Positions 10,318 through 30,996 of a stretch of 64,000 bases of DNA are shown here, in pieces; the first letter of the stretch is position 1, and each line of letters begins with the position of its first letter. The notes under the pieces were generated by a model. The model saw nothing but the letters and a program-made list of their open reading frames with translations, was not told the origin of the DNA and did no database searches. A program made the position numbers and the translations under genes. This stretch comes from Selaginella moellendorffii (taxonomy: Eukaryota > Plantae > Lycopodiophyta). The stretch spans positions 2,060,117-2,124,116 of the forward strand of contig NW_003314261.1 of NCBI RefSeq assembly GCF_000143415.4, given 5' to 3'.

Positions 10318-10613
10318 TAATTAGATTAGGATTTAACAGTTTTAATAAAAATTAATTAAAATAATTCTGCATTAGGACTCTACAATCTAATTACTTCTTA
10401 ATAATAATGTATAGTATTACTATATCAAACGAAAATTCCGCTTTTGTTCTTTTTTTGTTCTCTCCAAAGCGAAAAGAAAAAAGGAAACCGGTTCAAAAGA
10501 CATAGCTACACTTTGCCTTTTGCAAGAAAAACCAAAAAGAAAAAAGAAAATTATAAAGATAAAAAATAGACCAAAACTCACCTGTGCACCACATTTTCCA
10601 CTCGCCCATAAAC

Positions 10614-13437
10614 TTAGATAGATATCCCTTCCCTCTGTAGGGTCTGCATTAGCGCCTCCTCCTCTTCGTTCAAGAGCTTGACGCAGCTCTTCAAATCGCT
10701 CCTGGCCGAGACCATCACCTTGTCACCGCCATCTCTGGACTTTAGATCCTTGAGCACCGCCTCGAGCACCTGGCGCCGGACATACTCGTCCTGGACCTTC
10801 TCCAGAATCCCCGGCAAGATCTTCAGCTGCAAAGCTCGCGACGTCGCGAGCGCCGCAACGAGCTGGCCAATCTGTTTGGGCGCCATGGGACTGTCGATGG
10901 CGGTCTCGTCCAGCTGCTCGGCTAGAAGCATCAGCCCCGACGCGAGCTGCGCCTCCGTCACCACCCCCTGCGCATGGAGATGGTTGAAGAGCTTGAAGAG
11001 GAGCTCGCGCTCCCTGTCGCGCTTCTCCAGCGCCAGTGTCACGGCAACCTGGACGAACTGTGGATGATAGTCCGGAGACTTCATCTCCTGGATGCACAGC
11101 GTTGCCTCGGTCAAGTCCATGATGCTGAAGTACTCCTCCAGTAGCGACTCAGACTTCTTGTTCAGTATGCCCGATGATGGAGATGGCGTCGCGGCTCGCT
11201 CTTCACTGATAACCGGAGGAGTTGGAGCTGGAGTCGGAGCTGGAGCCGGAGCTGGCTTTGGAGCCGCTGGTGGCGCTTCGGCCGTTGGACCCCCGGTCCC
11301 GAGCAGCGGACTAGACTTCCCCAAGAACACCGAACTTGCCTGTGGTAGCACCCTTTGTTGTCTACCCGGGACGCGGCCGGGAATGTTTGCTGACTGATAG
11401 GACATCGCTGCCGCCGCTGCCGCCGCTTCTCGCTGCTTACTCTTCTTGGGTCCAGCCATTTCCCAAGGACCATCGGGGTCTATTCCCATTGAACGAGGAG
11501 GCCCCCCAGGCGCTCCAGGAGCACCGGGCATGGGTGCACCAGGCATCAACCGACCCGCTGGCATGAACGATGGATCCTTGTTTATGGCACTCCCGGGCCT
11601 TCCGTTTCTCGAACGTATCCCGAGTTTCTGCTCTGCTTCCGCGTGAATTTCGTTTATGGTCTTTGCTTTTATCTGGGAAAGATGGGAAGTGTTAAAAGCC
11701 TGAAATACAAGGAAACACAGCATACCTCTTCTCGTCTTGGAATCCACTTGTTGCTACGCAGATCCAATACGTCGCGGACCATGAACCGCAATCTCGAAGG
11801 CAGGTTCTTGTTGTTACCCAACTCTTTCATTCTCCGGAAATATTCGTCCAGCGACGATCGGGACTTCAAGTTTTCCTCGACTTGCTTTCCAACAGTCGCA
11901 AAAAGCTGGCAAAGTGCTTCGATATTTTCTTCAACAGGAATAGCAGTCCGATCCGGTCCAAGTAACTCCTGAAATTATGAAGAAGTTACACGTTATAACC
12001 ATAATTTCACAACTCACCATAATGCAAGCGTGCACGATCTTCTCGGGGATCATCCTTTGCTTGAAAAGCTCGCCAATAAATCGAATGTTCCCAAGTGTGC
12101 GTAGTTTAACCTTTCTTTCTTTGTCCATGCGTTCAAGTTCTTGCTCAGGCGATCGCATTTCTTTCACTTCAGCACGTAATGCAGCGGCGCCTTCAAATTC
12201 TTCCTGGCAAGTGTTCAGCAGAATCCGACGAAAGGTCGTAGGCTTCTCTCCCGGCTCGGAAGAAGGAAATTCTTGCAAGGTAGTGCTCAAATGTACACAT
12301 AGTTGTGAATACATGGGACAGAATGTCGGCTCTGCAACAGCCTTGTCGAAGATTAACGAGATAACTCCCTGCAGCAAGAAAGAAATAGGAAACAATGAAC
12401 AACAAATATATCGCCGAAATTGAGAGCCTTACCTTGAGCTTCTCAGCAGTATCAATGCCAGCTTGCAACAATTGTTCCAGCAACACGTCATACTTTTCAG
12501 GTGTCAACTTGTTCAATATTCTGAGAAAAAAAAAGTGTGAGAATCAACGCAAGAGAATCAGGAAAGCGATGGATACCCCTTGACCGTTCTAAACACCCGC
12601 TCCTCCTCAGACTGTGATCCCCTCCGGACCCAAGGATTAGCTGCCTTCACTATTGGAGGAGCTGCCTGCCGGTCGTTCTGGTAATAAACAAGCTCTTAGA
12701 GAAGATTTCTGATTTAAATGCCATACCGGAGGTGGCTGTCGCGCATTGAACTGGCTCGACGCTCTCTCTTTGGAGTAATCCACAGGCGACACCTTGTCTT
12801 CCGAGGTACTGCGTGTACGCCAATCTCTTTTATCAGTTTCCACCGGTCTCTGGGGCTGGAAAAAAAAACACTCTCCATCTTACAGAGGCATAGACAAAGC
12901 CAAACGCATTACCATTGTGTCCAGACGGCTCCATTCTTGTTCCTCGCTCAAGCTGGAATTCACCTCAGCGACCAAGCTCAAAATCTCCGATGTAGCATCG
13001 CGACAGATCTGCACAGCGATGATAAATTCCGCGATCGCGCAGCGAGCACAAGTAGCACAGACCTCTTGATACTGCAATAAATCCTCCCTTGTGTACCGCA
13101 GCTTTTCCCAATCGGCCTTCCTCGACTCCTACACAAGACAATCGGTCATATCAGGCAGAGAATGCACAGATCGGCGCTGCGATCCAGCTCCCGAGCAGAC
13201 CTAATTGCGGCGAGCATGCAACAATACCTTGGCTGGAGCGGGTCGGAAGACGAATCCGGAGGGCGTCCTCCCTCCCGGCCCCAAGAATCCTCCAGTTGCA
13301 TCGCCGGGGGCACCGTTGCTGGTCCCAAACCTCGGAAACCCTCGGCCGCCGCCAGGCCGGAGGCTCACTCCCCCCAAATCTGTGGTAGCGCCTGAGGATC
13401 CGACGAGCGACGATGGCGTTATTGACGACACCTCCAT
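10614..13437 (-). CDS. eIFiso4G: Eukaryotic translation initiation factor iso4G, multi-exon
   Basis: N-terminal SLRPGGG motif; eIF4E-binding RYTREDLL; MIF4G domain ([38 protein letters not shown]); C-terminal MA3 domain ([14 protein letters not shown]). Confidence 0.93.
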
Positions 13438-13626: not shown

Positions 13627-15483
13627 TTAGGGCTCTTGCGTGAAGACGTTGGAGACGAGAATGTAGCCCGCGCCATTCCGGGGATGGAGATGGAGGACGC
13701 GTTTCGCGGCGTCCCCGATCGAGTGCTTGTAGAATCGCGTCGCGGCGAGCAGGCACGTCCAATCCAGCGCGTCGGGCACGAATGGCATGTTTTCGAGGAG
13801 ATCGAGCGCTTCTTCCAGGTATCCGGCCCTCGCGAGCACATCCACAACGCAGGAGAAGTGCTGCTTGATGGGATTCACCCCATAATCCATCCTCATGCTC
13901 AGGAATTGCTCGATTCCCAGGCGCGCGTCGCCGATCTGGCCGATCGCCAGGAGAACGATGATGAAACAGGGCTCTTGCGGCGAGAATCTCAGCTTCATGC
14001 GATTGAACTCCGCTAGGGTTTCGTGCGGCCGTTCGTTCTCCGCCAGACCCAGAAGCATCGTCCTCCACGAGATGAGATCCCTCTCAGGCATGGAGACGAA
14101 GATTCGCCTCCCGGATTCCAGATGCCCGTTCTGGGCATATGCCGCCACCATGGCAGTCCACGTCACCTCGTTCCTCGCCGGCATTTGATCAAACAAGATC
14201 TTTGAGGCTCCGAGATTCCCAGACTGGGAATATGCGGAGCAAACTGCCGTGTGAGAAACCACGTCCTGACCGGGCATTTTTCTCACTAGGGAATCTGCAT
14301 CTTCAAGTAACCCAGCACGGGCATATGCCGCTGCCAACGCAGTCCACGATTGGAGGTCCCTTTCAGGCATCGAGTCAAACAATGACTTGGCATATTCAAG
14401 GCGCCCAGCCTGACAATACGCAGCAACCACAGCCGTCCACGTCAGCAGGTCTTTTGCCGGCATGTTCTGAAAGATCTCGCTAGTCTCTTTCACACAGCCC
14501 AATCCACTGTAGGCTGAAAGCATAGCATTCCACGTCAAGAGGCTGTGATAGGCCATGGACTCGAAAGTGCGCCTGGCCTCTATGGTATACCCGCTTTGGG
14601 CGTAGGCTGATAACATGGTGTTCCAAGATACCAGGCTGTGTTGCGGCATATTCTGAAACATTGCCTTGGCATCTAGAATTTTTCCGCTCTGAACATATGC
14701 CGCCAGCAATGAGTTCCAAGTGACGTGATCTTGTAGTGGCATATTCCTAAACAGTGTCTGGGCCAAATCAAGATGCCCACAGCGGGCATATGCGCTTAGC
14801 ATCTCATTCCAAGTTATGAGATTGTGCTGTGGCATGGATTCGAAGACAAACCTTGCTGAGTCGGCATGTCCAAGTCGCGAGTATCCCGCCAGCATGGCAC
14901 TCCACGTAATCAGATCCCTAGCCGGCATTTGGTGAAACGTCCTCTTTGCGTCGGGCATATGCCCACTTTGGGTATACCACGTCAGCATGGCCGTCCACGT
15001 GATCAGGTCCCGCTCAGGGAAAGTCTCAAAGAAAGCCACGGCGTTTTCGAGGCAAATTTCTGCAGATAGCATGGCATTCCACGTACTCAAACTCCGCAAA
15101 GGCATTCTTTGAAAGAGGCGCTTGGCATCGGAATAATGCCCGTTTGAGGCATTTGCGCAAATCATCAAATTCCACGAAGCCAAGTCTGTCTCCGGATTCC
15201 CTTCGAATAACTTCCTGGCCTGATCCATCTGCCCGTTTCGCGAGTACGCCGCCATCAGCAGGTTCCAGCTCGCGACATCGCGCAGAGGCATGCCATCAAA
15301 CAGGATCTTGGCGTCCCTCAGATGCCCGAAGCGGGTATATGCGGTCAGCAGCGTTTTCCATGCCTGGAGATTCCATTGCCATGGACTGAAGGCTCTAAAG
15401 AGCTTGCTCGCTTGCCCTAGATCCCCAGTTCTGCAATGTGAAGCTAGCAGGGATTCCCGGGATCTGGAAGCGGCATCTGGCAT
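13627..15483 (-). CDS. PLS-class pentatricopeptide repeat protein with E domain and no DYW (putative organellar RNA-editing specificity factor)
   Basis: Intronless 618-aa ORF with ~14 tandem ~31-aa motifs (..W.AML.AY...G....A...F..MP..D), then HFSCVVDVLARAG and an E motif (MPFVPD...W..LL.A). Confidence 0.93.
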   Translation of the reverse strand: MPDAASRSRESLLASHCRTGDLGQASKLFRAFSPWQWNLQAWKTLLTAYTRFGHLRDAKILFDGMPLRDVASWNLLMAAYSRNGQMDQARKLFEGNPETDLASWNLMICANASNGHYSDAKRLFQRMPLRSLSTWNAMLSAEICLENAVAFFETFPERDLITWTAMLTWYTQSGHMPDAKRTFHQMPARDLITWSAMLAGYSRLGHADSARFVFESMPQHNLITWNEMLSAYARCGHLDLAQTLFRNMPLQDHVTWNSLLAAYVQSGKILDAKAMFQNMPQHSLVSWNTMLSAYAQSGYTIEARRTFESMAYHSLLTWNAMLSAYSGLGCVKETSEIFQNMPAKDLLTWTAVVAAYCQAGRLEYAKSLFDSMPERDLQSWTALAAAYARAGLLEDADSLVRKMPGQDVVSHTAVCSAYSQSGNLGASKILFDQMPARNEVTWTAMVAAYAQNGHLESGRRIFVSMPERDLISWRTMLLGLAENERPHETLAEFNRMKLRFSPQEPCFIIVLLAIGQIGDARLGIEQFLSMRMDYGVNPIKQHFSCVVDVLARAGYLEEALDLLENMPFVPDALDWTCLLAATRFYKHSIGDAAKRVLHLHPRNGAGYILVSNVFTQEP

Positions 15484-15962
15484 ATGCTCAATCAGTGTTA
15501 AAAGATCAAAGAAGCCGGCATTTTATTCGTCCACGTCACAAATCGTGTGCCTGGGCCCCGTACCATGTGCCATGTGTATGTTGTGCACGCTATTATGCTC
15601 TTTTCATTTTTCTTTCCTTCTTTGCAAGTGCTATTTCTCCGTTCCCTGCCACAAGCCTTCCTATCTTCTCATCTTCCATCGATAGTTTCGATTTCGTCAC
15701 ATTCCCTGCGATCTCTGGCTGTTCTTGGTGTTTGCGCGACCGATCGTCTCATCTTCCATCGATAGTTCTTTCGGATCTATCTTCCTCGATTTCATCACAG
15801 TCCCTGCGATCTCTGGCCGTGCTTGATCCAGTGGCACCGATCCTTCGTTGTGAGATTCTCGGAGCTCTAAGAGGTGTCATCTCTCACCTCTTAGTTGTCC
15901 TACACACATCGCCGTCCTGATGCTTGCTTGCAAGCGCACGGGATCCAGGAGCACCGATCTTT

Positions 15963-16047
15963 TGTGAGGCTTGCCTTTGATTCTCTGAGCTCTGGGAGGT
16001 GTGATTCCCTCACCTCCTAGCTCTGAGAATCAACAGCAAGCCTCACA
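15963..16047 (+). ncRNA. Pre-miRNA-like hairpin 1 (candidate mature UGAGGCUUGCCUUUGAUUCUC at 15965-15985, star at 16027-16047)
   Basis: TGTGAGGCTTGC pairs with GCAAGCCTCACA, TTGATTCTC with GAGAATCAA, and GGAGGTG with CACCTCC. This gives a 21-nt duplex with a symmetric 2-nt mismatch. Confidence 0.72.
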
Positions 16048-16230
16048 CACATCGGCTGTTCTTTGATCTCGTCTTGCAGGCGCGGGATCCAGGACTTGTG
16101 AGGGTTGCCTTTGATTTTCTGAGCTCTCGGAAGTGTGATTCCCTCACCACCGAGCTCTGCACACATCGAGATCTTTGGCTGTTCTTTGATCTCGTCTTGC
16201 AGGCGCGCGGGATCCAGGAGCAGCGATCTT

Positions 16231-16315
16231 TGTGAGGCTTGCCTTTGATTCTCTGAGCTCTGGGAGGTGTGATTCCCTCAGCTCCTAGCTTTGAGAGTCA
16301 ATTGCAAGCCTCGCA
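16231..16315 (+). ncRNA. Pre-miRNA-like hairpin 2 (identical 5' arm; candidate mature at 16233-16253)
   Basis: Same 5' arm as hairpin 1. The 3'-arm substitutions mostly create G:U pairs. Confidence 0.68.
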
Positions 16316-16553
16316 CGCATCGAGATCTTTGGCTGTGCTTTGATCTATCTCGTCTTGCAGGCGCGCGGGATCCATGAGCAGCGATCTTTGTGTTGATTCT
16401 GGGGGGTGTGACTCTCTCACCTCCTAGCTCTGGGAATCCTCACACATCGTGTATGCATCCCATCGCACTGGATTTTCACTGCATGAGCGTCGATCTAGCG
16501 ACTTCCCGCTAGAATATTTCTGCAGGAGCCCTAATCTAGGTTTGTGGCGAGCA

Positions 16554-17755
16554 ATGGCGCCCATTGCGAGCTCTGGCGAGCGATTCTTGTGCTGCTGGAG
16601 CGCTGCTGCGTGCCATTCGGATTATCTCCAGGTGAAAGATTCGTGATGGGGATTTCTCCTTCGTTCTTCTTCGTGCTTGTCTTAGCTTTGTCTTCCGTGT
16701 GTCTGTTTCTTTGCAGGTGAAAAGAGTGAGCTTCAAGCCTCCCGGGACCGAAGCCACCATTTTAAACAACGTGAGCTTCTCGCTTCCCGAAAAGAGGTCT
16801 ATCAAAGTTTCGAGGCTCGTGACTTTCCTAGGACTGTTCTTGCAGGCTAGGATTGATCACTGGAAGAAGCGGTAGTGGCAAGACAACATTGCTTCAGGTA
16901 TCTCTCTCTTTGTTTCTTGAGCGTTTTTTGCATTTGGTCCTCACCACTTTCACACACAGATATTAGCCGGCCTGGCGTCGCCCACACAAGGCTCCATCGT
17001 TCTAGGCGGCACCAAAGGGGACACCACAGTCAGCCTCACAGCCAAAGTGGGCCTGGTTTTCCAGTTTCCTGAGAGGTTGTACGTCTTTTCAAAGCCTACA
17101 AATGAAATTGACAACTTGATTGATCCTCGCAGGTACTTTCTCACGGATTCCATCCTGGAAGAGCTAAGCTTCGGGTGGCCAAGCAAAAAAGAGGACTTTT
17201 TCTCCAGACAACTGCTAGCAATGCGCGTGCAAGCCGCTGTAGCTGCCGTAAGAATCTCGTTTCTTCCCTCACTAAGCTTTATGGACGTGCACAGACTGGT
17301 CTCGCCAGCATATCTTGGAACACCAATCCTCGAGCTTTGAGCGATGGATTCAAGCGACGATTAGCACTCGCTGTGCAACTGGTAACCTGTGATTTCACCG
17401 CTGCTCACGAGGACTACGTTTCTTGTCCTCTTTTTGTTGCAGGTCCGCATGCCAGAGCTGCTGCTGCTGGATGAGCCGCTCGCTGGCCTGGGTATGATGT
17501 TGTTTGTGGCCACCTTGGAATTCTTTAATGCTGTGGCTGTAGATTGGCAATCACGATCCGAGATAGCGAAGCTTCTGAACAACTTGAAGAAGGAGAGGAC
17601 GTTGCTCGTTGTGAGCCATGATCTGCGGTAACTTGCGTGATTAGTGCTTGGATCTTATTTTCTTTCCTCGCAGAGAGCTGATTCGACTGGTGGACAAGGC
17701 GTGGGTTATGGATATGGGTGGGACTTTGGTTGAGCAGCTAAATTCTACTCTCTAG
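16554..17755 (+). CDS. ABCI11: ABC transporter I family member 11 (soluble plastid ATP-binding subunit), multi-exon
   Basis: VSFKPPGTE..ILNNVSFSLPEK; Walker A GRSGSGKTT; VGLVFQFPER; signature LSDGFKRRLALAVQL; Walker B LLLLDEPLAGLDW; VVSHDL. Confidence 0.88.
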
Positions 17756-17799: not shown

Positions 17800-20700
17800 C
17801 AAACCAGTGAGGCTGGCTGGGCAATTAAAAGTTTTTAGTATTGCAACGGACTTCGCAGGCTCAACTCACAACAGCGGAAAGGCTCCTCGAACCGGGCAGC
17901 AGCGGAGGACATCCACATGACTAACGCCGCCTCCCAACTCTACATTGTTACACAATGAGCCACCTGAGGTGCCGCTCATGGAACGGGAGCAGTACGAACG
18001 ATTACATCCTGGTCAGCCAAACTAGTCTTTGACCATGTGGTGTACTAAGAGTTCCTGGCCCCCTCGGGATGCATGTACTGCTTACAACACTCCTGTCGAC
18101 AAGCAGAACTCGCTGTGGTCACGACCGAGTCATGCCAGCATGGCTGCCCGACTTTGCCCAGCAAGTCCAAGAGCTCTGGAATGCACTGCCCACGACCCCC
18201 TGATATTGAGGTCAGCTGACTGATCGACATGCTCACACGGTAGCACAGGAGTATTTCTCAGTTCACTCCCACCGCCCCAACTGGATGCGTTCCTAGATTG
18301 CAACGGTGGGACAAAGAATGTGATTGAGCCCTCTGCATGAAAAAGAATTGCTAATAGTCAAGCCATATACGACACCTTCTGTGTTCTTTGCAAAGCTAAG
18401 AAACAGAAACACCACTAGAAAATTCCAGAAGCTAAATGATGCTTGATCCTTTAAGTTGCAAATGTTATGACCCAGTGCCAACAAACGAAGTATGTTATGC
18501 CTTCTTGAAGTTCTTTCACCCAAATGTGGAAGTGAAACAAAGAAATATGAAAAGAAAAATGATGAGATTATGAGTATGGAACATTTGATATTTCACCCTC
18601 ATTATACAACTGAGAAGAATATTTTATCTTCCCTCCAAGAGTTAATAACTAGTGTAAGAATGGCAAAACAAAAGGAAAAAAAAAAAGGAAAGAAAAAAGT
18701 GAAGGGGAAAATGGACTGTGAAATTCTTGAGGAGGTTATTGATGAACTAGATTTCAAACCTACTTAGTATCACATACCCCAATTAGCCAAAAATATATAT
18801 ATAAAAGAAATGATCATTACACCTGATACATCATCTTGCACTAGAAGAGTTGTTTCTTTTGCATTCTCGATATTTAATACCACTTCTTTTACAATCTCCA
18901 TAGTAACATATAATACTTTTGCCACTTTTTCACCTTCCTCCATATCTACTTGTGCTATTAGTTTTGTGTCATACAATAAAAGAGGGTTATATGGAAGTTA
19001 TCTAGTTCTGGCCATCAATCTTCTTCCTAAAAAGAATAAAGAATCTGGAATAAGAAAATCAAAATTATTAAATTATATATATAAATCCCACACTCAAAAA
19101 GCTACTTTTTACATTTTGGATCACCTAAGGTTGTAAAAGAATTTATTTAAAATAAAAGACAGTTGTTCCAATAAGAAATAGCCATAGGTGACAAATGACA
19201 AAGTTAAAGGATGAATTTTAGTGTTGAGATAGTTAACAAGCAGACTAATGTGGTAGAATTGCCATGCTGGTTAGAGGGGGAAGGACATCTAGTATAGTGG
19301 CACAAGGAGCTCATAGAGGACATAGACTAGGACTTAACAACATGGAGATTGAAGTTAATGGCTTCTTCATGAAGGAAATAAAGGATGTGCAAAACAGACT
19401 GATGGTAAATAAGGAGTTTGAGAGAGAAGAAGTACCCAAGCTATGTCAAAAATGAATTGCACTAGGGGTGGAAGTGAACTAGGTGATAGAAAACACAGTG
19501 GCATTCTAGAAGTCACTGATCCAAGAGAAATCAAAAGGTACTTTTTATCTTGTGGCAATGAATAGATTGCCAATAGGACAATGATTCCAAGTAGAGGATG
19601 CCTGAAAATGTTTGGAATATATCACATTTGAGATAATAGCACACCTCCAATGGGAGTGTGATGTGACAAAAGAGACATGGAGAATGATAGCTAAAGTGAC
19701 TAAGGAGCTTTGAAATCAAGCAAGATTTTGAAATCTACAAAGGGGATGTCACTCAATGGTTCCCAGAGGCAAGGAGGTCAAACATGGGATTGGCTTGGCA
19801 AAAGATTGGTTATTGGGGATGTTCAGATCGAGGCACTAGAGATCAATTGGGATGCCATTGGAGTAGAGATTGGACTACAATCTAGGAGGCCAGGGGATAG
19901 ATTAGGTGGGAGATATGGCATGTATCCGGGGCTTAAGCACTTTTGGGAAGCTCAAAACCAAAGGCATTTTGAGGGACAGAATGCTCAGATTTTGGTGATC
20001 ATAACAAACTAATGAGGGCTCATGTTGGTAGCTGTCCGTCTCAGGAAATGCTGTCGCAAGAATATGGCAAAAAGAAGGTGCCTAATACTTTGGCAATGGC
20101 AATGAATCCCTTACTATAAAGGGAAATATGAGGGAGGTATCAAATGGAAGTGGAGACCACTAGATATTGTAGTAAAGGAGGCAAGATAAGATGATTTGGC
20201 ATTAAACCCTTTGCGAAGGAGACAACCACAACAACCTCAATTGGAAGGCAGCAACCACCAATAGGTGGGAGATAGTGAAATGTTATAGTTGAGAGAGTAG
20301 CACCATGAAAGTATCTTTTTTATAACAGTCCCTAAGGGACATTGAGATATATATAATGCCCCAATAAAAAATAGCCCAGACCAATCCATGTATATGTGCC
20401 ATTATTGCTAGGAGATGGCAATCCATATTAATGCCCAGCCGGTGGAGCTTCATATGGGGGATGAGTATGTGATTTATGATTATGATAGTAGTGAATTAGG
20501 TACATTGGTGCAGGTGAGCTTTTGTCATATTGAGAGGCTATAAACATTTTATGTTATACAAATTGATTAATCTAGTGTTTATAAATTATAAACATATTTA
20601 TAATTATAATGATTCATAACCATGCTATAATGAGGTCCACCAAGTGCCAATTCACCTAATCCCGAGGCAATATGCAAAAACCATTGCCATCCAATGCAAA

Positions 20701-23700
20701 TATAGAAGGTGATCTGTTAGTAGGATGTTTTAGAAAAGAGACAAATTCATAAGCTTGTGGCTGTATTGGAAGCCTATTGGATGCATAGGTATTTGTAAAT
20801 GGCTTATCAATGTAATAGCTAGATCATGTTAATTCTTCCTAAAGGACTTCTAACTAATATCAAATTGCTAAAATTCTATGCTTGAGTGCCTTTGTCTAGG
20901 CATCACACCAATGCTATGATAGCCATTTAACACTAACCAGCCCTAGAATGTTCAAAAGATGAGCTCTTGCCTTGAGATAGAGCACTACAACTAGAAATCC
21001 AAGCAAGAAATCCTTGAAAGGTAAATTATACCTCCTAAGCAACTTTTACATTTCTTCCTTGCTCGTCCTTCAAGAGGATTATTTCCTTTGTTATCTCTGA
21101 GGGAGATAACACTACAGAGAACCCAAAGCTTTTGGGTTTTTAATGGAGTGAATGTTGCTCTTGCTACATGATGGTGTGGTGCATATATTAGAGGCTAAAA
21201 GCTTTAACAAGGAAAATCCAACTTTGAGAAGGACCAAATAAATATTTTTCTCCATTTTGAGGTTATTAATTTAGCAACTTTGAATGGTGGGAAAGAATTT
21301 GAATTTTTTAATTGATTTTCTTATCAAAGCAGTGATATATATCCCTATGTGGCATGGCAGTGGAGGAGGAGCCTTGTGAGGTGGACACCCCAAACTCAAA
21401 GGTGAACAATTCATACATAATAGTTCTTTGTGATATAGTGATTTCAAGTGAGGACATGGAAGTGCCACACAATAATTTCCATTAAAAGGATGCTTTAGGC
21501 AGTGAGATGGAGGTGCCACACGATTATCTCCACTAGTTAGAGGTTCCATGCAAGTTAAGAGAGAGTACTTATGTTTTTGTGATCAATTCTAATGATCTTC
21601 ACCTTGAAATATCACCATGTGTTCTGATCTAGGTTATTAATTCAAAGTGTATACAAATCAAAAGCATATTCATAAATAGTATTCTAAAAGTGGAATATAT
21701 AACACCTAGATGTTAGATGTGAATAGTAAAAGATAAGGGAGTTCTTATAGGGAATCTAGCTTTAATTGAAAATATAGAAAAACTATATACTAAAAAATAA
21801 GAATTTTGAAATATTTTGCTATTATCTCTCTCTAATTTAGAGCTCAAGCGAGAGATTACACATTATTTAATCTAGGCAATGAGTGCAGACACAAAGTCTA
21901 TTTGTCCTCAATTTACCTCCAATAACACAAAAATGGATTTCAAAATCTTATTGGATCACTCAACTTAATTATTGGTATATTGGTGGCAACAATTGCTAGA
22001 GAAGTGTTATTAGAGTTTAAGCCCCTATAAAAATTGCTTGATGACATACCCTTAACTAGATATCAAGGTCACGAGAATACCAAATTGACATATGATGTGA
22101 TCATATAAGAACTCTACTATAGAATGTTAATTTGTTATCTTGAGAGCAATAGCCTCCACCCATTTAGTATTGCCAATAATAAATAATAGTGCATATATAA
22201 AGATGTTGGAATAAAATTCAAGTGTAAAATAGACCTAAAGAAGTAATGAGATAAAAAAGAGGTTTGGGAGTGTTATTTAGAGGATTGAACTGTTAGCAAG
22301 TCATGCATCTAACAACATATAATAGCATATGCTAGACTAATAGAAACTACTAGAAAGAATGGTCTATGCTGTTGTTAATCCCACAAAATAACTACCACAA
22401 GTATAATTGTTCCTAAAAATTATATGCTTTGATCTCTAAAGCCTATTGTTATGTCACTAGCAGTTGTCAAGAGTTTATTGTTGTCAAGTTACTGCACCAC
22501 ATCTAGTAAAGATGTAGAGTGTTGTTACAACAAAGTACTAGTTGGGATTAACTATCACAAAGCAAAGGTGACGTAAAATTCTTAGAGGAGCATAATGCAA
22601 GAATAGATCCTTATATTCAACAAAACATTATTTAAAAGAAAAGCTAGCATATAAAAATAAATATAAAAAATATAGGCACACAAAGTAGAAAGTAGTAGAA
22701 GCACTCTAAGGTGTAAACTATAGGTATGGCCTTATGCTCTGTCTTAACAAAATTACATACTGATGTTTTAAACAAATAAGAGGTGAAGTGCAATGCAAGC
22801 ATCATCATGATTCGGCTAATAGAGGCAAATACTAAAGGCCAACCAATAAAAAAAGAAGATAAAAAAAAAACTAACATACATAAAGAGAATAATGTCCCCA
22901 CTGGAACATCTTAACTTCCCACCACCTTAACCATGACTCAATTGTTGTAAACAACTTACATCCATATGGCCATCTTTATGTCACCACATTTGAATCTCAT
23001 TTACTTTGCCTCATGCTTTTCTTCAAAAAGTGCAACCTACTATACAACTCTTTAAATGTTAACTTTGATAAATATGTGTTAACTCCACCTAAACCTTGTG
23101 GTGGGGTGGTTTGCCAGAGTATGATAGCTCTCATCATACCAAATTTCATAAACGAGGACATTACAACATATTGCTTAGGTATCAATTTTGATCTCCATTG
23201 ACAATACATGTCCTATTTAAGCTCTATTGCCCAACTAGTAGCATTGTAATTGATTATACAAAAGGTAGTGGTTTGATGGTTATGGTAGCATATGATTCTA
23301 GAAAATTAGTGTTTGCAATTGAAGAATATAACTTCTTCAAATGCTGTCTTAAAGATTTTTATCCTTTTTTATCAGTTGCTTCAAAGAGGTAGTTTATGGT
23401 CTTTCAAAAACTTATATATAATATATATTTAATTTTTCTTTTATATCACAAATCCCTAATAAAATGAGCTTTAGAATATATGCAATATGAGTTTTCCCCT
23501 TAATTGAGGAGTCCTATAAAAATTTCAGAAAAGTTTCCAGACCCATGCAACTATTTGTTTTGTCCAAATAAAAGTAACATATGGGACACTGAAGATAATA
23601 TATGCTTATTCTTTCAAGAGTTTTTGCTATATTTGGAGCGAGATCTTGAAGAAATAATTGACAGCGCTCTTAAAATACAAGAAGCAATCCAACTCTAATA

Positions 23701-23800
23701 GCAATATTTGAAATATTAGCTGGAAGAGGGATATCATATTCAATGATACTCAAGGCTTCAAAAGGAAAAAGCTCATAACATTTATTATGTGGAGGGAAGG
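17800..23800. other. Gene-poor, mostly AT-rich interval, probably heavily decayed TE-derived sequence
   Basis: Only short stop-riddled ORFs with no motif I can recognise. CG dinucleotides are visibly depleted, and the interval adjoins LTR remnants. Confidence 0.45.
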
Positions 23801-23898
23801 TAGAATGTTGATAAAAGTTAGAGATAGAGGTAAAGATTTATATAAGCTGAATATCCAAGTATCCATTGGTAAAGATTTATATAAGCAAAATATCCAAA

Positions 23899-24435
23899 TG
23901 TATAATAGGGATAGTGGGTAGGTTGGGCATGGCCAACCAATCTAAGGCATAGTTTAACTCCTAGTTGCGTGTTTGTCCTTGTTCTGCGTTCGGCTTGGGT
24001 CTAAGCCCAAGTTCCATTCCATGCTAGCTGGTGGAGTACCTATATCCTTGCGTTAGGCCACCAGTATGTTGAAATAGCACAAGACTTTGTTTGGCTCTGT
24101 TTTGCATGTTAATTCTAGCATTGAGATGCTAAATACTTTAGGATGTTCCAAGTTGCTTTGTGCTCTTATCCCTTCACTCCTTGGGTTATATGCTTAGGAG
24201 TCCTTCCGTGCTCCAATGCCATTGCTCCTTGGTTCCATATTTGGGAGTTTGGCACTGTTCCTTCATTTAGTAGCCTAAAGCTCTAAAACTCAAGTTCCAC
24301 ACCACTGTACTTTAGACATGTGGCATGTGACACATGGCATCTGTCACATGGCACATGGAGGGTTTAGGTTCTGCTTCCATGGTTATCCTATGGTAAATCA
24401 CCATAGAATAAAGGGTAAAAACCACATGCGCTACA
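23899..24435 (-). mobile_element. LTR-like repeat, family 2, left copy
   Basis: The reverse complement reads TGTAGCGCATGTGG...CCCTATTATACA, then TTTGGA. It is homologous to 24878-25401. Confidence 0.75.
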
Positions 24436-24522
24436 CAATCATATAATCATTCTTGAAAATATAAGATTCTATACTTATAATTAACTAAACTTTCAAAGAA
24501 ACTATGATTCTCATGGCTCTCA

Positions 24523-24674
24523 GGGAATATAGAAAATATACATATCAATTAGCCCAAAAACCCTAGTTTATATACAAGAGCGAGTGGTCTAGATTGAAAC
24601 TAACCTAATGGCTACCAAATCCCACTATGCTAATATTAATATACGACATCATAGCTGTACATTTGGACCTCACA
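24523..24674 (-). mobile_element. 3'-truncated solo LTR of the 6057-10317 gypsy family
   Basis: The reverse complement TGTGAGGTCCAAATGTACAGCTATGATG...TAATATTAGCATAGTGGGATTTGGTAGCC...GGGTTTTTGGGCTAATTGATATG matches the LTR. Confidence 0.88.
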
Positions 24675-24877
24675 ACCTTAAATTATAGGGTGGTCTAAAT
24701 ATCTTATATTCAACACTCACTAATGTAGTGTTTATCACTAGAATATTGTTCTTCTTATAAAATTATAGTAACTGTATGTTTTTAACTCTTTTTTGATTTT
24801 CTTATATATCTATATATGCATACCTTCCAAATTAGCTCTTAAGCATTTGTGACAATAATTAAGACAACTTACCAAAT

Positions 24878-25401
24878 TGTAGCGCATGTGGTTTTTACCC
24901 TTTATTTTATGGTGATTTACCATAGAATAACCACAAAGTGAAATCTCAACCCTCCATGTGCCGCGTGCCACATGCCACGTGTCCAAGGACAACAGAGTGG
25001 AACCCGAGTTTCAGGGCCTTGGGCCACTGAACAAAGGTACAGAGCTAAACTCCCAAACATGGAGCCAAGGAGCAAAGGAACTAAAGCACAGAGCAACTTC
25101 TGGGTGTACAACCCAAGGAGGAAGGGATAGGAGCATAGAGCAATTTGGAATAGTCCTAGAGTATCTAGCATCCTAATGCCAGGATTAACATGCAAAGCAA
25201 AACTAAATGGAGTTTGGCGCTATTTCAGCATACCGATTGTCTAACGCGAGGATATAAATATTCCACCAGCTAGCATGGTGTGGAACTTGGGCTTAGACCC
25301 AAGCCAGACACAGAACAAAGATAGGTATGCAAGTAGGAGGTAGACTATGCTTCAGGTTAGTCAGCCATACTCAACCTACCCACTATCCCTACTATAATAC
25401 A
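24878..25401 (+). mobile_element. LTR-like repeat, family 2, right copy (~525 bp, TGTA...TACA)
   Basis: TG...CA termini, an internal TATA-like GATATAAATA, then TTTGG (PBS-like start). Inverted homolog of 23899-24435. Confidence 0.75.
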
Positions 25402-27801
25402 TTTGGAACCCCCCTTGAGGAACACACACTTTGGGCTTTCACTCCAAGCCTCACTTAGTACCAGGAGGTAGTCTCTAGGACAAGCTTGAAACTTATTAAA
25501 TATGGAATGTCTTTAGATTGTAAATTTGGACACGGGATGAACACCATTGTGTTCAAGACAATCTCTACATTCCATAGATATGCCAAATGAGCAAATCTAA
25601 ACACTTTCTATAAATAGTATTTGGGACCAAAATGAGACTAACATAAAAGGCATGATAGCGAGGGTGTTTGACAAACATGGTAAGCTATCATCTTGCAAAT
25701 ATTGAGGGACCAAGCTCAATATCACAACGGTTCCTAATACTAGCAAGTGCAAGTTAATAAATGAGTTTCTTTAACTAAGTCAAGTATGCTTGACTAATAG
25801 CACTTAGGAATTCTATCTTTATGCTCATCTGGTCAAGTGCACACGCAAAGACCAGTTTCTCAACTAACTTAGGCTTGACTAACAAGTATTTTTCGTGACA
25901 CAAACCCATACAACCATCTCTCTTGTTTAAATAAAGGCAATATATGAGACATTAAAGATAATATATATCTACATCAAACATTTTTGCCATATATAGAGTA
26001 AAATCTTGAAAAAATTTCATATCACTTTTAGAGCATTAGAGGTACTCCAACTCTTCTACCAACATTATAAAGAAGGAATTCTTGTTTAGTTGCATTTGAG
26101 GTTGCAAATAGAGGAGCCTTGTAACAATTGTTATATGGAAGGAAAAACCGTAAAATGAAAAGGATTATTATATTGAAGTGAAAGTGAATTATTGGTTGAA
26201 TTTGGGGATGGAGGTGGAGACTTACATGAAAGCTTTCTGGGACTTGAAATAAACTTCTTTTGAACCATTCTAACACTCAAGAAGAATTAACAATAAAAAT
26301 TATTTGATAACTATAATGTTGGTATTGATTAATATACTATATTTTAATCTTGGGAATGAGGTTTTATTATAATATAGACTAAACCTTAATTATAAGTCTT
26401 GATAGCAAGGTTACATATTAATTACAATCTATTGTTAAAGATAAGTGGCTTTAGGGTTCTAAAAGCTAAAGACTAGCACATAATAAATATGTAGCTTTAT
26501 TTTAGCTTGCCATTATTTTAGTTTGCTAACTTTTTGTTTTAGATTATGAAAGTAAAAGAAACATTTTATTAATAGTGATAATGGTCTCTATATTCCCAGA
26601 CAAATAATAAGAACCAAAAGTGTAATATAGAGATTGTGGTAATGAAACAAAATTAATATTCTCACATTTCTGTATGCTAAAATTAATTATAGATTTTTTG
26701 TATTCTTTGCTTTCTATCTCTATAAAAACCACATTGAATGAATGAAAAAAAAAGTATTCTGAACTATCTATACATTTCTATCCTAATGGTCAATTTTTGA
26801 ATTAAATATTTAAATATTGAAAAATCAAAATATTAAAATCTTAAAATATACAATAGAAATTTTCAGTGGCATAGCAAATTTCAATATTCCCATATTTATT
26901 TGGGTAAAAAAAAAGATCTTTATAACCAAAATATTATGTATGTATAATACTTTTATTTTATAAAATACTTATTAATTATTTTATTGTATAGCTTACATTA
27001 GAAAAACAAAATTCTACAAACAAATAGATTCAAAATATAAATTTCTCCAAACAATTAATAATTAGATTCATGAATTTCATGTTTGCCAAGGAATAATATT
27101 TTTTTGATATGAAATTTATTTGTCAAATTTATAGTTGACTACATTGACTAACATTGATTTTAGCTGAGTTGAGCTGATCTCAATTTTGGATCATTCCCCT
27201 TGGAGTTCCATAAAAAAAATTTTTAATATTACACAAAAAATCTAATGGGTAAAAACCACTTATGTAAAATAAAAATATTTAATAAATTAAATTGGGCCAA
27301 AGGATATTTAAAGAACTTATAAAAATACTTATAGACTTACACTAGAAAATAAATCTAAAGTATTGACATCTAAAAAACTATAAATAATTACAATGTAAAT
27401 TGATGTAGTAGCTACTTTCAATTATGACCCATTCAAAGATGCCAAAGAACTCTTAAGAATAGTAATGAAAATTAAATTAGTATAGAATACAATAAACAAT
27501 CACATAGAAATACTTGCCTTTATAATTATATTTATAATAACAATGTTTTTAACCTATAACAAAGCTATGTAAAATAAAAACACTTAGATCTACAGTATTT
27601 AATTGATACTATAGTTTTAAAAAATTTAAAATTGCTCTATAAGGTATATAAAATATATAGACTGTGAGACATAAATCCCTAATCCCCAAAGTAGAGCCAA
27701 AAGGGTGTGATATGGTAGTGACCAAAGTGGAAACTAAACAAGCATAACACATTTAGATTAAAAACTCTGATTTAAAAAGTCGAGAGCAAGAGTGGAACTT
27801 T

Positions 27802-27947
27802 TCATGAAATACTTGAGGAACAAGTACAAAATGATCAATAAGTGAGTCTCTAGAAATGGGATATAAGCACTCTTACTCTCCTCATGAAATACTTGAGGAA
27901 CAAGTACAAAACGATCAATAAGTGAGTCTCTAGAAATGGGACATAAG
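27802..27947. repeat. Tandem duplication, 80-bp period (~66-bp near-identical core)
   Basis: TCATGAAATACTTGAGGAACAAGTACAAAA(T/C)GATCAATAAGTGAGTCTCTAGAAATGGGA occurs twice. Confidence 0.9.
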
Positions 27948-28684
27948 AGGATTAACACATGATATGTAGAAGTGTCAAAATTGTGCCCAAGATGGAGTCT
28001 GAGATGAAAATTTCATTAATAATTTAGGGTTTAATACATGGAGTCTGAGATGGAAAATTTAATAACTTACATGGACAATTTAATCATTGATTATTTTTTA
28101 GATACACTACTCATTTCTTTCTCTCAAAATATAAGCTTTATATCATAAATACTCAAAACTATCCATTACCATGCATAACTAATAACTTGCATTAAGGTAC
28201 TATCAACAACTATTCCCCATCAAAGGGTATAAACATCAACAAGTAAATTTTCGGCAATTACTTTAGAAGATAGTTTACTGCTATTCAAAAGTCTATATAG
28301 CTATCAATGCTTGCATTAGAGACTTGAAATAGTTTCACCACAAAAAATGGTTCTCATCTTTAATCTTTATCTAATATGTATAACATGAAGTAAAAATATA
28401 ATATATATGCATTGTGTGTTCCTTGAATATAGATGGTAGCAAATTCTAGAATTGTATGCAATTAAAATTGTAACTTTTCCAAAACAGATATATAATAGAA
28501 AACATATTATCACTTAGATTTACTATCTTTCTCACCCTTTTAGTATTCAATTTAAATTTATTAATTTATATTAATATACATAAAATTGTGTTGATTTTTT
28601 TTAAAATAAAAAATTACAAGTATTTAATAATAAGCTAACAAGTTATTATCTGATACTTTTGTTTAATTTATTGATTAAGTTTTA

Positions 28685-29188
28685 CTATTTATTTATTTGG
28701 CATATTTCTGTTGTAAATGAAAGAATATCACCTTCAAGCCATGCATTAACATTAAATTTTCTAGATGTGACATAGCTATCAGGATTATTTGGTAAAGGTG
28801 GTATAATTTCAACCCATTCTGGATACCATCCAGGTTTATGACCAGAATTATCATGTGATAAAGTCATTTCACAAATTACATCAGGTTCCTCCAAACATTC
28901 TGCTTCTAAATCTGAAAATGTTGAAAGTGTACATCTTTCAAAATCATCTCTATTTTTGTTATCAAGATTCTTAAATTCAAGAATTTTTCTAAAGTATGTA
29001 ATAAATGTTACTTTTATATTTGCATCAGTTCCAGCATCGTCTACACATGCTGTTTTAATATTTATACCATATAAACACTGCATAAAAAAAATTTAGAAAA
29101 CTAGAAAAGCATTAATTGCATTTTAAATTACCCCAATTATGCTTGGTATAAAAGAAATTAACAGGAATATAGTGATGAATGAGACCAT
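28685..29188 (-). CDS. Secreted single PLAT/LH2-domain protein, 2 exons (29188-29132, 29077-28685)
   Basis: Signal peptide MVSFITIFLLISFIPSIIG, a 54-nt GT-AG intron, then CLYGINIKTA...AGTDANI...FERCTL..F...HDNSGHKPGWY.EWV...F.V..WL. A TATA-like ACTATAAAA lies ~35 nt upstream. Confidence 0.85.
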
Positions 29189-29339
29189 CTTCTTATTCTC
29201 AACTTGAACTTGATCAGCTTTTATAGTAAACCTAAATGAAACTCTAGATTGACATATGGCAGTATCTTTGTGCTTCTAAGCTCCTTGCTTGGCAGCATTG
29301 TTTCGCGCCAAACGTGAGTTGGACAGCAGACAATGATCT

Positions 29340-29382
29340 GGAATCCGCCAGAATTCGTGTGGAATCCGCCAGAATTCGTGTG
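29340..29382. repeat. 21-bp tandem duplication
   Basis: GGAATCCGCCAGAATTCGTGT occurs twice. Confidence 0.85.
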
Positions 29383-29577
29383 CCACTGCCAGCCTTGTGA
29401 CGTTCACCGGCTAATCTTGCTATGGTAGGTGAAGTGAAAAGCCAAGCAACGCTTGTAGTTCTCGAGCTCGCTCGCTCACCCGCTTCAATCAAATCGTGTC
29501 CCCGGACCGAGGACGACTAGTTCTTTTTTGTTTCTCAAGAAAAGTTGTGAAGTTGGATCAAGCAAAACTTGCAGCGA

Positions 29578-30996
29578 TCAATCTACCTGGGATGAATTTA
29601 GCTTGGCCTTCTTCTTTGCCTCGAGAGCTGCAATCACACTCTCCAGCGCCGGCGTCTCGTGGCTCCTGTTTTGGATCAGCAGCTCGGCGATCTCTGCCGG
29701 AGTCACTTGCACCTCCCCGATGAGCTCCTCGATCCTCGGAAACAGGCGATGGTCCTCCACGTCCAAGTGCGTCCTCGCGAGAACTTTGAAAGCCGGGAAG
29801 GCGCAGTAAGACAGGCAGATGTGCATGTCCATCCTCCCGGATCGAATGAGCGCCGGATCGAGCTGGTCGATGTGGTTCGTTGTAAAGATTAAGATCCTCT
29901 CGCTTCCGGTGGAAGACCACAAGCCATCGGTGAAGTTGAGAAGCCCAGACAGCGTAACTTTGCTCTTCTTCTCGTCTTCTTCATCATCATCGTCGTCATC
30001 ATCATCGCTCTCGCCACCATCTTTCTTCTTTTTCTTCTCGCCCTCCTCCCCGGGACGCTTCTTGAGATCCAGCGAGCAGTCGATGTCCTCGATCACCACG
30101 ATCGCCTTGTTGCTGATGGCGGTGAGGTACTTCCTCAGATTCGAGTTGTTCTTCACGTCAGTGAGCTCCAGATCGTAGATGTCATACCCGGTGAAGTGAG
30201 CTATGGCGGCGATGAGCGACGACTTCCCAGTTCCTGGCGGCCCATGGAGAAGATACCCTCGCTTCCACGCCCTTCCAATCTTCCGGAAGTAGGCCTCGCC
30301 GCCCATAAAGCCGCGGAGATCGTCCATGATCTGCTGCTTGAGCTCAGGGTCCATAGCCATGCTCTCGAAAGTTGCAGGATGATCGAATGGAACCGACATC
30401 CACGGCCGCTTCCGGTACTCCCAGCCGCTAAAGTTCGTGAAGAGCTTCCTCTTGCGGTTCCTGTGCTGGACCTCCTCGGCGTTCTTGACGACGTGCTCCA
30501 GATAGCTCGGGAGGATCGACTGCGCGAGCTTCGTGTCCACCTCCAGCGTGTAAGATCGCCGCGTGCCCCAGCGCCGCGACTCGCTGTTCTCGATCACGCG
30601 TCGCGTCCACCAGAAGGAGACGCCGCGAAATCTCTCCCGGACGCTCTCGCCACTCGCGAGCGCGAAGCTGGGCTTGGCGGAGTTCTTGACGCGGACGAGA
30701 TCGAGGCGGCGGGTGGAGGCTGTCCGGGCGGAGGCGGAGGTCAGCTCCGCGACGTGGAGGTGGACGAGATCATACATCTCGTTAAGCGAGGAGCCGGCCC
30801 ACTCGTGGACGTCAATGCGGGTCTTGCTCGTCCAGAAGAGGAAGTAGAGGCGCGGGAGAAAGGAGATGGCGGCCTCGCGGAGGAAATCGCGTACCTCGCG
30901 TGGAAGGATGCCGCGGAGAAAGGCGACGAGGCCGATGAGCGAGCCGATGTAAGCGACGATGCTATCCCCGGATCCCCATACTCCTCCGCCCATCAT
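29578..30996 (-). CDS. BCS1/OM66/ASD-like plant AAA-ATPase, intronless
   Basis: AAA_assoc-like N-domain; W..VPFDHPATFESMAMD; AWKRGYLLHGPPGTGKSS; IVVIEDIDCS; VTLSGLLNFTDGLWS; LDPALIRSGRMDMHI. Confidence 0.95.
   Translation of the reverse strand: MMGGGVWGSGDSIVAYIGSLIGLVAFLRGILPREVRDFLREAAISFLPRLYFLFWTSKTRIDVHEWAGSSLNEMYDLVHLHVAELTSASARTASTRRLDLVRVKNSAKPSFALASGESVRERFRGVSFWWTRRVIENSESRRWGTRRSYTLEVDTKLAQSILPSYLEHVVKNAEEVQHRNRKRKLFTNFSGWEYRKRPWMSVPFDHPATFESMAMDPELKQQIMDDLRGFMGGEAYFRKIGRAWKRGYLLHGPPGTGKSSLIAAIAHFTGYDIYDLELTDVKNNSNLRKYLTAISNKAIVVIEDIDCSLDLKKRPGEEGEKKKKKDGGESDDDDDDDDEEDEKKSKVTLSGLLNFTDGLWSSTGSERILIFTTNHIDQLDPALIRSGRMDMHICLSYCAFPAFKVLARTHLDVEDHRLFPRIEELIGEVQVTPAEIAELLIQNRSHETPALESVIAALEAKKKAKLNSSQVD

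Follow-up and report, generated by a model that had tools for sequence, protein, structure and literature searches.

The ~790-bp array at 15660-16450 of the window, by which we mean the whole 64-kb stretch of Selaginella moellendorffii DNA that was analysed, is the locus of a catalogued spikemoss miRNA, smo-miR1081. Its hairpins stand in tandem, two of them intact and several decayed, and it is an ordinary gene of a known kind. With high confidence, we explain the region as a whole as the smo-miR1081 locus in the form of a tandemly duplicated fold-back array, with two intact pre-miRNAs and transcription from the plus strand. The array is flanked by a minus-strand PPR gene and a plus-strand ABC_tran gene and is composed of degenerate units of ~117-158 nt.

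Layout of the array and its flanking genes

An earlier note on this DNA had described a tandem array of about five degenerate fold-back units between divergent genes, a description borne out by repeat families, inverted-repeat pairs and an alignment of the units. The repeat search returned direct-repeat families spaced 134, 134 and 139-158 nt within 15660-16450, together with four inverted-repeat pairs. Aligned with MAFFT and anchored on the GGGATCC motif, the five units are homologous, with a mean column identity of 72%, and the copies are arranged strictly head to tail at one site. Tandem Repeats Finder did not pick up the array at 15660-16450 because the units differ by indels. The genes and units are as follows:

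13627-15483, minus strand: PPR gene, divergent, 618 aa, single exon (ORF and gene call)
15660-15818, plus strand: the two leftmost units of the array, each a spacer-only remnant of ~80-98 nt (direct-repeat families D4 and D9)
15819-15935, plus strand: unit 1, decayed (unit alignment; fold -24.5 kcal/mol, z -3.0)
15936-16079, plus strand: unit 2, intact pre-miR1081 fold-back 1 (core hairpin 15963-16047; extended stem ~15934-16078)
16080-16204, plus strand: unit 3, decayed, 3' arm deleted, without a hairpin (unit alignment; fold z -0.9)
16205-16362, plus strand: unit 4, intact pre-miR1081 fold-back 2 (core hairpin 16231-16315)
16363-16450, plus strand: unit 5, decayed (unit alignment; fold -27.2 kcal/mol, z -3.2)
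16554-17755, plus strand: ABC_tran-domain gene, 266 aa, 9 small exons (gene call and Pfam hits to ABC_tran and AAA_21)

The three units that had been taken for eroded copies (at ~15848, ~16097 and ~16389) are indeed homologous to the others and have lost arm segments in the alignment. In unit 1 the miRNA and star segments are both gone and the loop-proximal stem alone is left (10 bp, 15867-15894), with a G-C to A-U double change in this residual upper stem relative to the intact units, as read from the alignment. The 5' arm of unit 3 is a variant of the miRNA with two mismatches at 16099-16119, and unit 5 has had ~19 nt of its miRNA arm deleted and keeps a residual short hairpin. The spacer-only remnants at 15660-15818 share homology with the inter-hairpin spacer and lack a hairpin; a third copy of family D4 (60%) is found in the spacer at 16302-16341. 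Local tandem duplication accompanied by decay, also part of the original proposal, is shown by the unit alignment, and allelic unit variants occur in the RNA contigs described below. An ancestral fold-back unit of ~140 nt would have been duplicated head to tail, with units 2 and 4 staying intact pre-miRNAs, and small deletions would have removed one or both arms from at least three other units plus two spacer-only remnants.

Both divergent neighbours were also found in the expected orientation, and the last unit of the array stops ~105 nt upstream of the ABC gene ATG at 16554. The PPR ORF has one exact match in public assemblies, on scaffold GL377565.1 of GCA_000143415.2 (Selaginella moellendorffii), an assembly which we take to contain both haplotypes. 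Although the NCBI assembly carries a gene call for this 618-aa PPR protein, the clustered protein collection does not contain its exact sequence, and a word search returned relatives at 37% identity or less only, labelled as Selaginella moellendorffii paralogues, with no allele among them. Just past the 3' end of the PPR gene, and tail to tail with it, lies an eIF4G-like gene (MIF4G and MA3 domains, 780+ aa, ~10600-13400, minus strand). The eight introns of the ABC_tran gene are very short (46-85 nt), all GT..AG and all confirmed by raw reads or contigs. Blocks with a GC content of 0.25-0.39 at 1-2000 and ~18000-30000, against ~0.5 in the genic parts, are probably repeat- or transposon-rich intergenic DNA. 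No tRNAs were found in the window.

Hairpin structure and identity with smo-miR1081

Folding confirmed two complete 85-nt hairpins at the positions that had been proposed for them. Hairpin 1 (15963-16047) folds at -61.0 kcal/mol over 101 nt (z -10.8) and hairpin 2 (16231-16315) at -56.1 kcal/mol over 101 nt (z -7.9), and in either case 0 of 200 shuffles fold as well. With their flanks included, the two become ~140-nt fold-backs of -87.2 kcal/mol (hairpin 1; z ~ -10.9) and -73.0 kcal/mol (hairpin 2), and both retain the same folds within an 842-nt fold of the whole array. The identical 5' arm contains the 21-mer TGAGGCTTGCCTTTGATTCTC, which matches exactly at 15965 and 16233, with 0 matches expected by chance; a near-copy with two mismatches is located at 16099, and a star-side complement with two mismatches at 16025-16045. 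What had been read as a symmetric 2-nt mismatch at duplex positions 11-12 is a symmetric 2x2 internal loop in both hairpins, the remainder of each duplex being paired and free of bulges, and in hairpin 2 two further pairs are G:U wobbles. The mature and star positions are:

15965-15985, plus strand: mature miR1081 copy 1, UGAGGCUUGCCUUUGAUUCUC, 5' arm (exact match; identical to annotated smo-miR1081, PMC5569507)
16027-16047, plus strand: predicted miR1081* of hairpin 1, GAAUCAACAGCAAGCCUCACA, with a 2-nt 3' overhang (from predicted base pairs)
16233-16253, plus strand: mature miR1081 copy 2, identical to copy 1 (exact match)
16295-16315, plus strand: predicted miR1081* of hairpin 2, GAGUCAAUUGCAAGCCUCGCA (from predicted base pairs)

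The predicted stars of the two hairpins differ at four positions, and star reads could therefore distinguish between them. Both hairpins were compared with structural criteria for plant miRNA genes (hairpin <300 nt, at most five mismatched duplex positions, at most three of them in asymmetric bulges, 2-nt 3' overhangs), which are reportedly those of Axtell and Meyers 2018, and both lie within every limit, with fold-backs of 85-140 nt, one symmetric loop and 2-nt 3' overhangs. In Rfam, the hairpins matched no family at the gathering threshold, the best match being animal mir-627, which scored 43.9 bits where 86 are required; such sub-threshold matches reflect generic animal miRNA-hairpin similarity. 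Over the whole window there was again no gathering-level match and no MIR1081 family was matched, and Rfam may hold no such family.

A resemblance of the 21-mer to smo-miR1081, raised in the earlier note, turned out to be exact identity: UGAGGCUUGCCUUUGAUUCUC is listed as Smo-miR1081.2304, identical to miRBase smo-miR1081, by You et al. (2017, Genome Biol 18:158, PMC5569507, Table S4, Additional file 4). What had been put forward as a new candidate small-RNA locus is instead an already annotated miRNA. The same study counts 283 small-RNA reads of miR1081 in S. moellendorffii and 63 reads of the same 21-mer in S. uncinata (PMC5569507), and the suggested lineage specificity consequently holds at the level of the genus and fails at the level of the species. 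One assembled transcript bears the hairpin, and five genome matches are given, two of them within genomic hairpins (PMC5569507). Degradome/PARE fragments on Smo11377 (F-box/LRR) are attributed by the authors to miR1081-guided cleavage (PMC5569507, Fig. S8A), and miR1081 star reads were not found in the supplements searched. For the first description of Selaginella miRNAs, that paper cites Axtell, Snyder and Bartel 2007 (ref. 29 of PMC5569507). Most of the other annotated single-locus miRNAs in the same table map twice (PMC5569507), which fits an assembly holding both haplotypes, and five matches, two of which are here, fit a tandem locus with unequal unit content per haplotype. Judged by this low genome copy number, the locus is very probably the annotated MIR1081 gene itself or an allelic copy of it. 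Outside the locus, no cis target site of miR1081 or its star with a penalty of 7 or less was found in the window; targeting of PPR or ABC by miR1081 in cis was rejected, no site at this penalty lying in their mapped extent.

The differences between the two intact hairpins are unevenly distributed. Across the 5' arm and loop they are identical at 52/52 positions, and all seven differences fall in the 3' 42 nt (the star side), for which the chance under random placement is ~0.004, (42/94)^7. Four of the differences are at paired sites, three being changes from G-C to G-U or from U-A to U-G that pair in plus-strand RNA and would give C-A mismatches in minus-strand RNA. The fold of hairpin 2 is -56.1 kcal/mol on the plus strand versus -45.1 kcal/mol on the minus strand (11 kcal/mol weaker), in line with wobble changes that keep plus-strand pairing only. 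The fourth change, C to G at 16281, breaks one upper-stem pair in hairpin 2. Identity of the miRNA arm and wobble-preserving drift of the star are evidence that both copies have apparently been maintained as plus-strand RNA hairpins.

It could be argued that just one of the intact-looking hairpins works, the other being a young pseudogene, in which case the array would be a relic in decay and not a source of miRNA from several copies. Three of the five hairpin units are already dead, hairpin 2 has one upper-stem pair broken and folds less stably by 5-14 kcal/mol, and two genomic hairpins were counted among five matches in a two-haplotype assembly (PMC5569507); against this, the miRNA arm is perfectly conserved between both copies, the star-arm changes preserve pairing by wobble on the plus strand, both duplexes satisfy the structural criteria and each hairpin has its own specific RNA contigs, and we hold such a reading to be unlikely.

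RNA from the array and its neighbours

Transcription was assessed in three RNA runs available as contigs (X1, X2 and X8) and in 12% of X24, a stranded RNA-seq run available as raw reads. X1, X2 and X8 are RNA, as their contigs hold GT..AG-spliced ABC exons; X2 and X8 come from two studies that are independent of each other and other than that of X1. In X1, hairpin 1 (15983-16083), unit 3 (16055-16206) and hairpin 2 (16251-16372) each have specific contigs of low depth, and the X1 contigs tile 15983-16481 in pieces, with breaks at the repeated 52 nt, where 31-mers lose uniqueness. No contig bridging both hairpins was present among the X1 records, which break at these shared 52 nt. One X1 contig ends in a tail:

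~16481, plus strand: poly(A) addition site, 73 nt upstream of the ABC ATG (nine unaligned A at the end of X1 contig 16343-16481; one run only)

X2 (record 9) and X8 (record 17) each hold one contig that covers 16251-16628 and is then spliced at least four times through the coding exons of the ABC gene. Some of the RNA, at any rate, passes without interruption from hairpin 2 to the ABC gene, whether by read-through or because the ABC mRNA has a long 5' UTR, and the joined array-ABC contigs could derive from overlapping transcripts. The poly(A) tail at ~16481 and the contigs joined to spliced ABC exons uphold the plus-strand transcription that had been postulated for the array. In the 12% of X24 that was read, there are zero reads over 15972-16475, which is expected of a rapidly processed or weakly expressed pri-miRNA, yet offers no positive support. 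The first mate of the ABC reads in X24 is always on the minus strand, and their coverage starts at ~16500-16560.

On the other side of the array, a few X24 reads over 15636-15971 have the orientation opposite to that of the ABC reads and represent minus-strand RNA, and a 1842-nt X1 contig (record 1) extends from the PPR coding region through to 15957. Apparently the 5' UTR of the PPR mRNA is ~470 nt or longer and lies in antisense overlap with the decayed left units of the array. If extended past 15985, this 5' UTR would carry a perfect miR1081 site. Minus-strand coverage ends just short of the predicted miR1081 slice position at 15974/15975, with few reads involved.

Several contigs depart from the window in the array itself. 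An X1 contig has a 21-nt insertion behind 15823, an X8 contig skips 88 nt to give a form without 15736-15823, and contigs of both X2 and X8 join 16019 to 16160 via CTCA, corresponding to a unit with a loop of the unit-2 type and without a 3' arm. These structural variants probably represent the other haplotype or other accessions with different unit content.

A more elaborate model would treat the array as a haplotype-variable polycistronic unit coupled to both neighbours, in which read-through would produce ABC isoforms with a long 5' UTR that are decapitated by DCL1, and the antisense PPR 5' UTR would be cut by miR1081 if it reaches past 15985; we regard this model as improbable. It is very doubtful that the hairpins serve chiefly in cis, as elements of an ABC isoform with a long 5' UTR, in which structure or cropping by DCL1 would set the translatable mRNA and of which miR1081 would be a by-product. 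The X2 and X8 contigs do run from within hairpin 2 past the ATG into spliced coding exons, and the last unit is only ~105 nt upstream of that ATG; however, ABC coverage in X24 starts at ~16500-16560 with none over the array, so that the long isoform is minor in X24, the poly(A) end at 16481 separates the array from the ABC gene in X1, and miR1081, itself conserved in another species, has a target in trans that degradome data support (PMC5569507). Finally, the units could be taken, as multiplied long inverted repeats, for copies of a dispersed MITE or a generic siRNA-producing repeat instead of a miRNA gene, a reading that the earlier note had named in its high-copy form as speaking against its proposal and that we reject on copy number as highly improbable, as there is no further copy in the 64-kb window and there are only five matches genome-wide, where other single-locus miRNAs mostly map twice (PMC5569507), the copies stand head to tail at a single site, and a discrete 21-mer was recovered from two species (PMC5569507).

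In our preferred explanation, a tandem smo-miR1081 locus with two intact pre-miRNAs, the plus-strand transcript would either end at the poly(A) site at ~16481 or read through into the ABC_tran gene, and DCL1 would excise a 21-nt miR1081/miR1081* duplex from each intact hairpin. The processing route is probably loop-to-base because an imperfect stem of ~16 nt and a small loop lie above the miR1081 duplex and an internal loop is only 2 bp below it; the structural rule for this route derives from work in Arabidopsis. The 5'-U 21-mer would presumably be loaded into an AGO1-type protein and would then guide cleavage of the F-box/LRR mRNA.

The locus among known plant miRNA genes

To our knowledge, the miRNA catalogue has one MIR1081 entry. 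The array shares with this smo-MIR1081 of miRBase the mature 21-mer, the species and the 5'-arm position on a stable hairpin; it differs in that one haplotype has two intact copies together with decayed ones, which adjoin the ABC gene and are partly co-assembled with it. Tandem homologous plant miRNA hairpins are known, e.g. the MIR395 clusters and the tandem MIR166 of Medicago, and these likewise display head-to-tail duplication, several copies of one mature miRNA and possibly a shared primary transcript. Unlike those clusters, the array described here is very compact (period ~134-158 nt), most of its units are dead and its unit content varies between alleles.

miRNA hairpins within or just upstream of protein-coding transcripts are also known (host-gene or read-through miRNAs), and the contigs joining hairpin 2 to spliced ABC coding sequence are similar to these. 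In contrast to an obligatory host gene, the array has a separate poly(A) end at 16481 and ABC coverage in the raw reads starts proximally to the gene, suggesting that the array and the ABC gene are two adjacent units with leaky termination. In the literature searched, we found no description of the tandem layout with two live and several dead units, of its allelic variation or of the junction with the ABC gene. The kind of miRNA and this member of it are both already known, and the layout, the allelic variation and the ABC read-through are small additions at the level of annotation.

For the annotation of S. moellendorffii, the single catalogue entry smo-miR1081 stands, on one haplotype, for a tandem row of hairpins of which two are intact and several dead, and a possible read-through into the neighbouring ABC gene is flagged; the importance of this beyond annotation is small, and it opens no long-standing question. 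The locus provides a small lycophyte example of miRNA gene birth and death, in which the miRNA arm is conserved, the star arm drifts by wobble changes only and the units vary between alleles.
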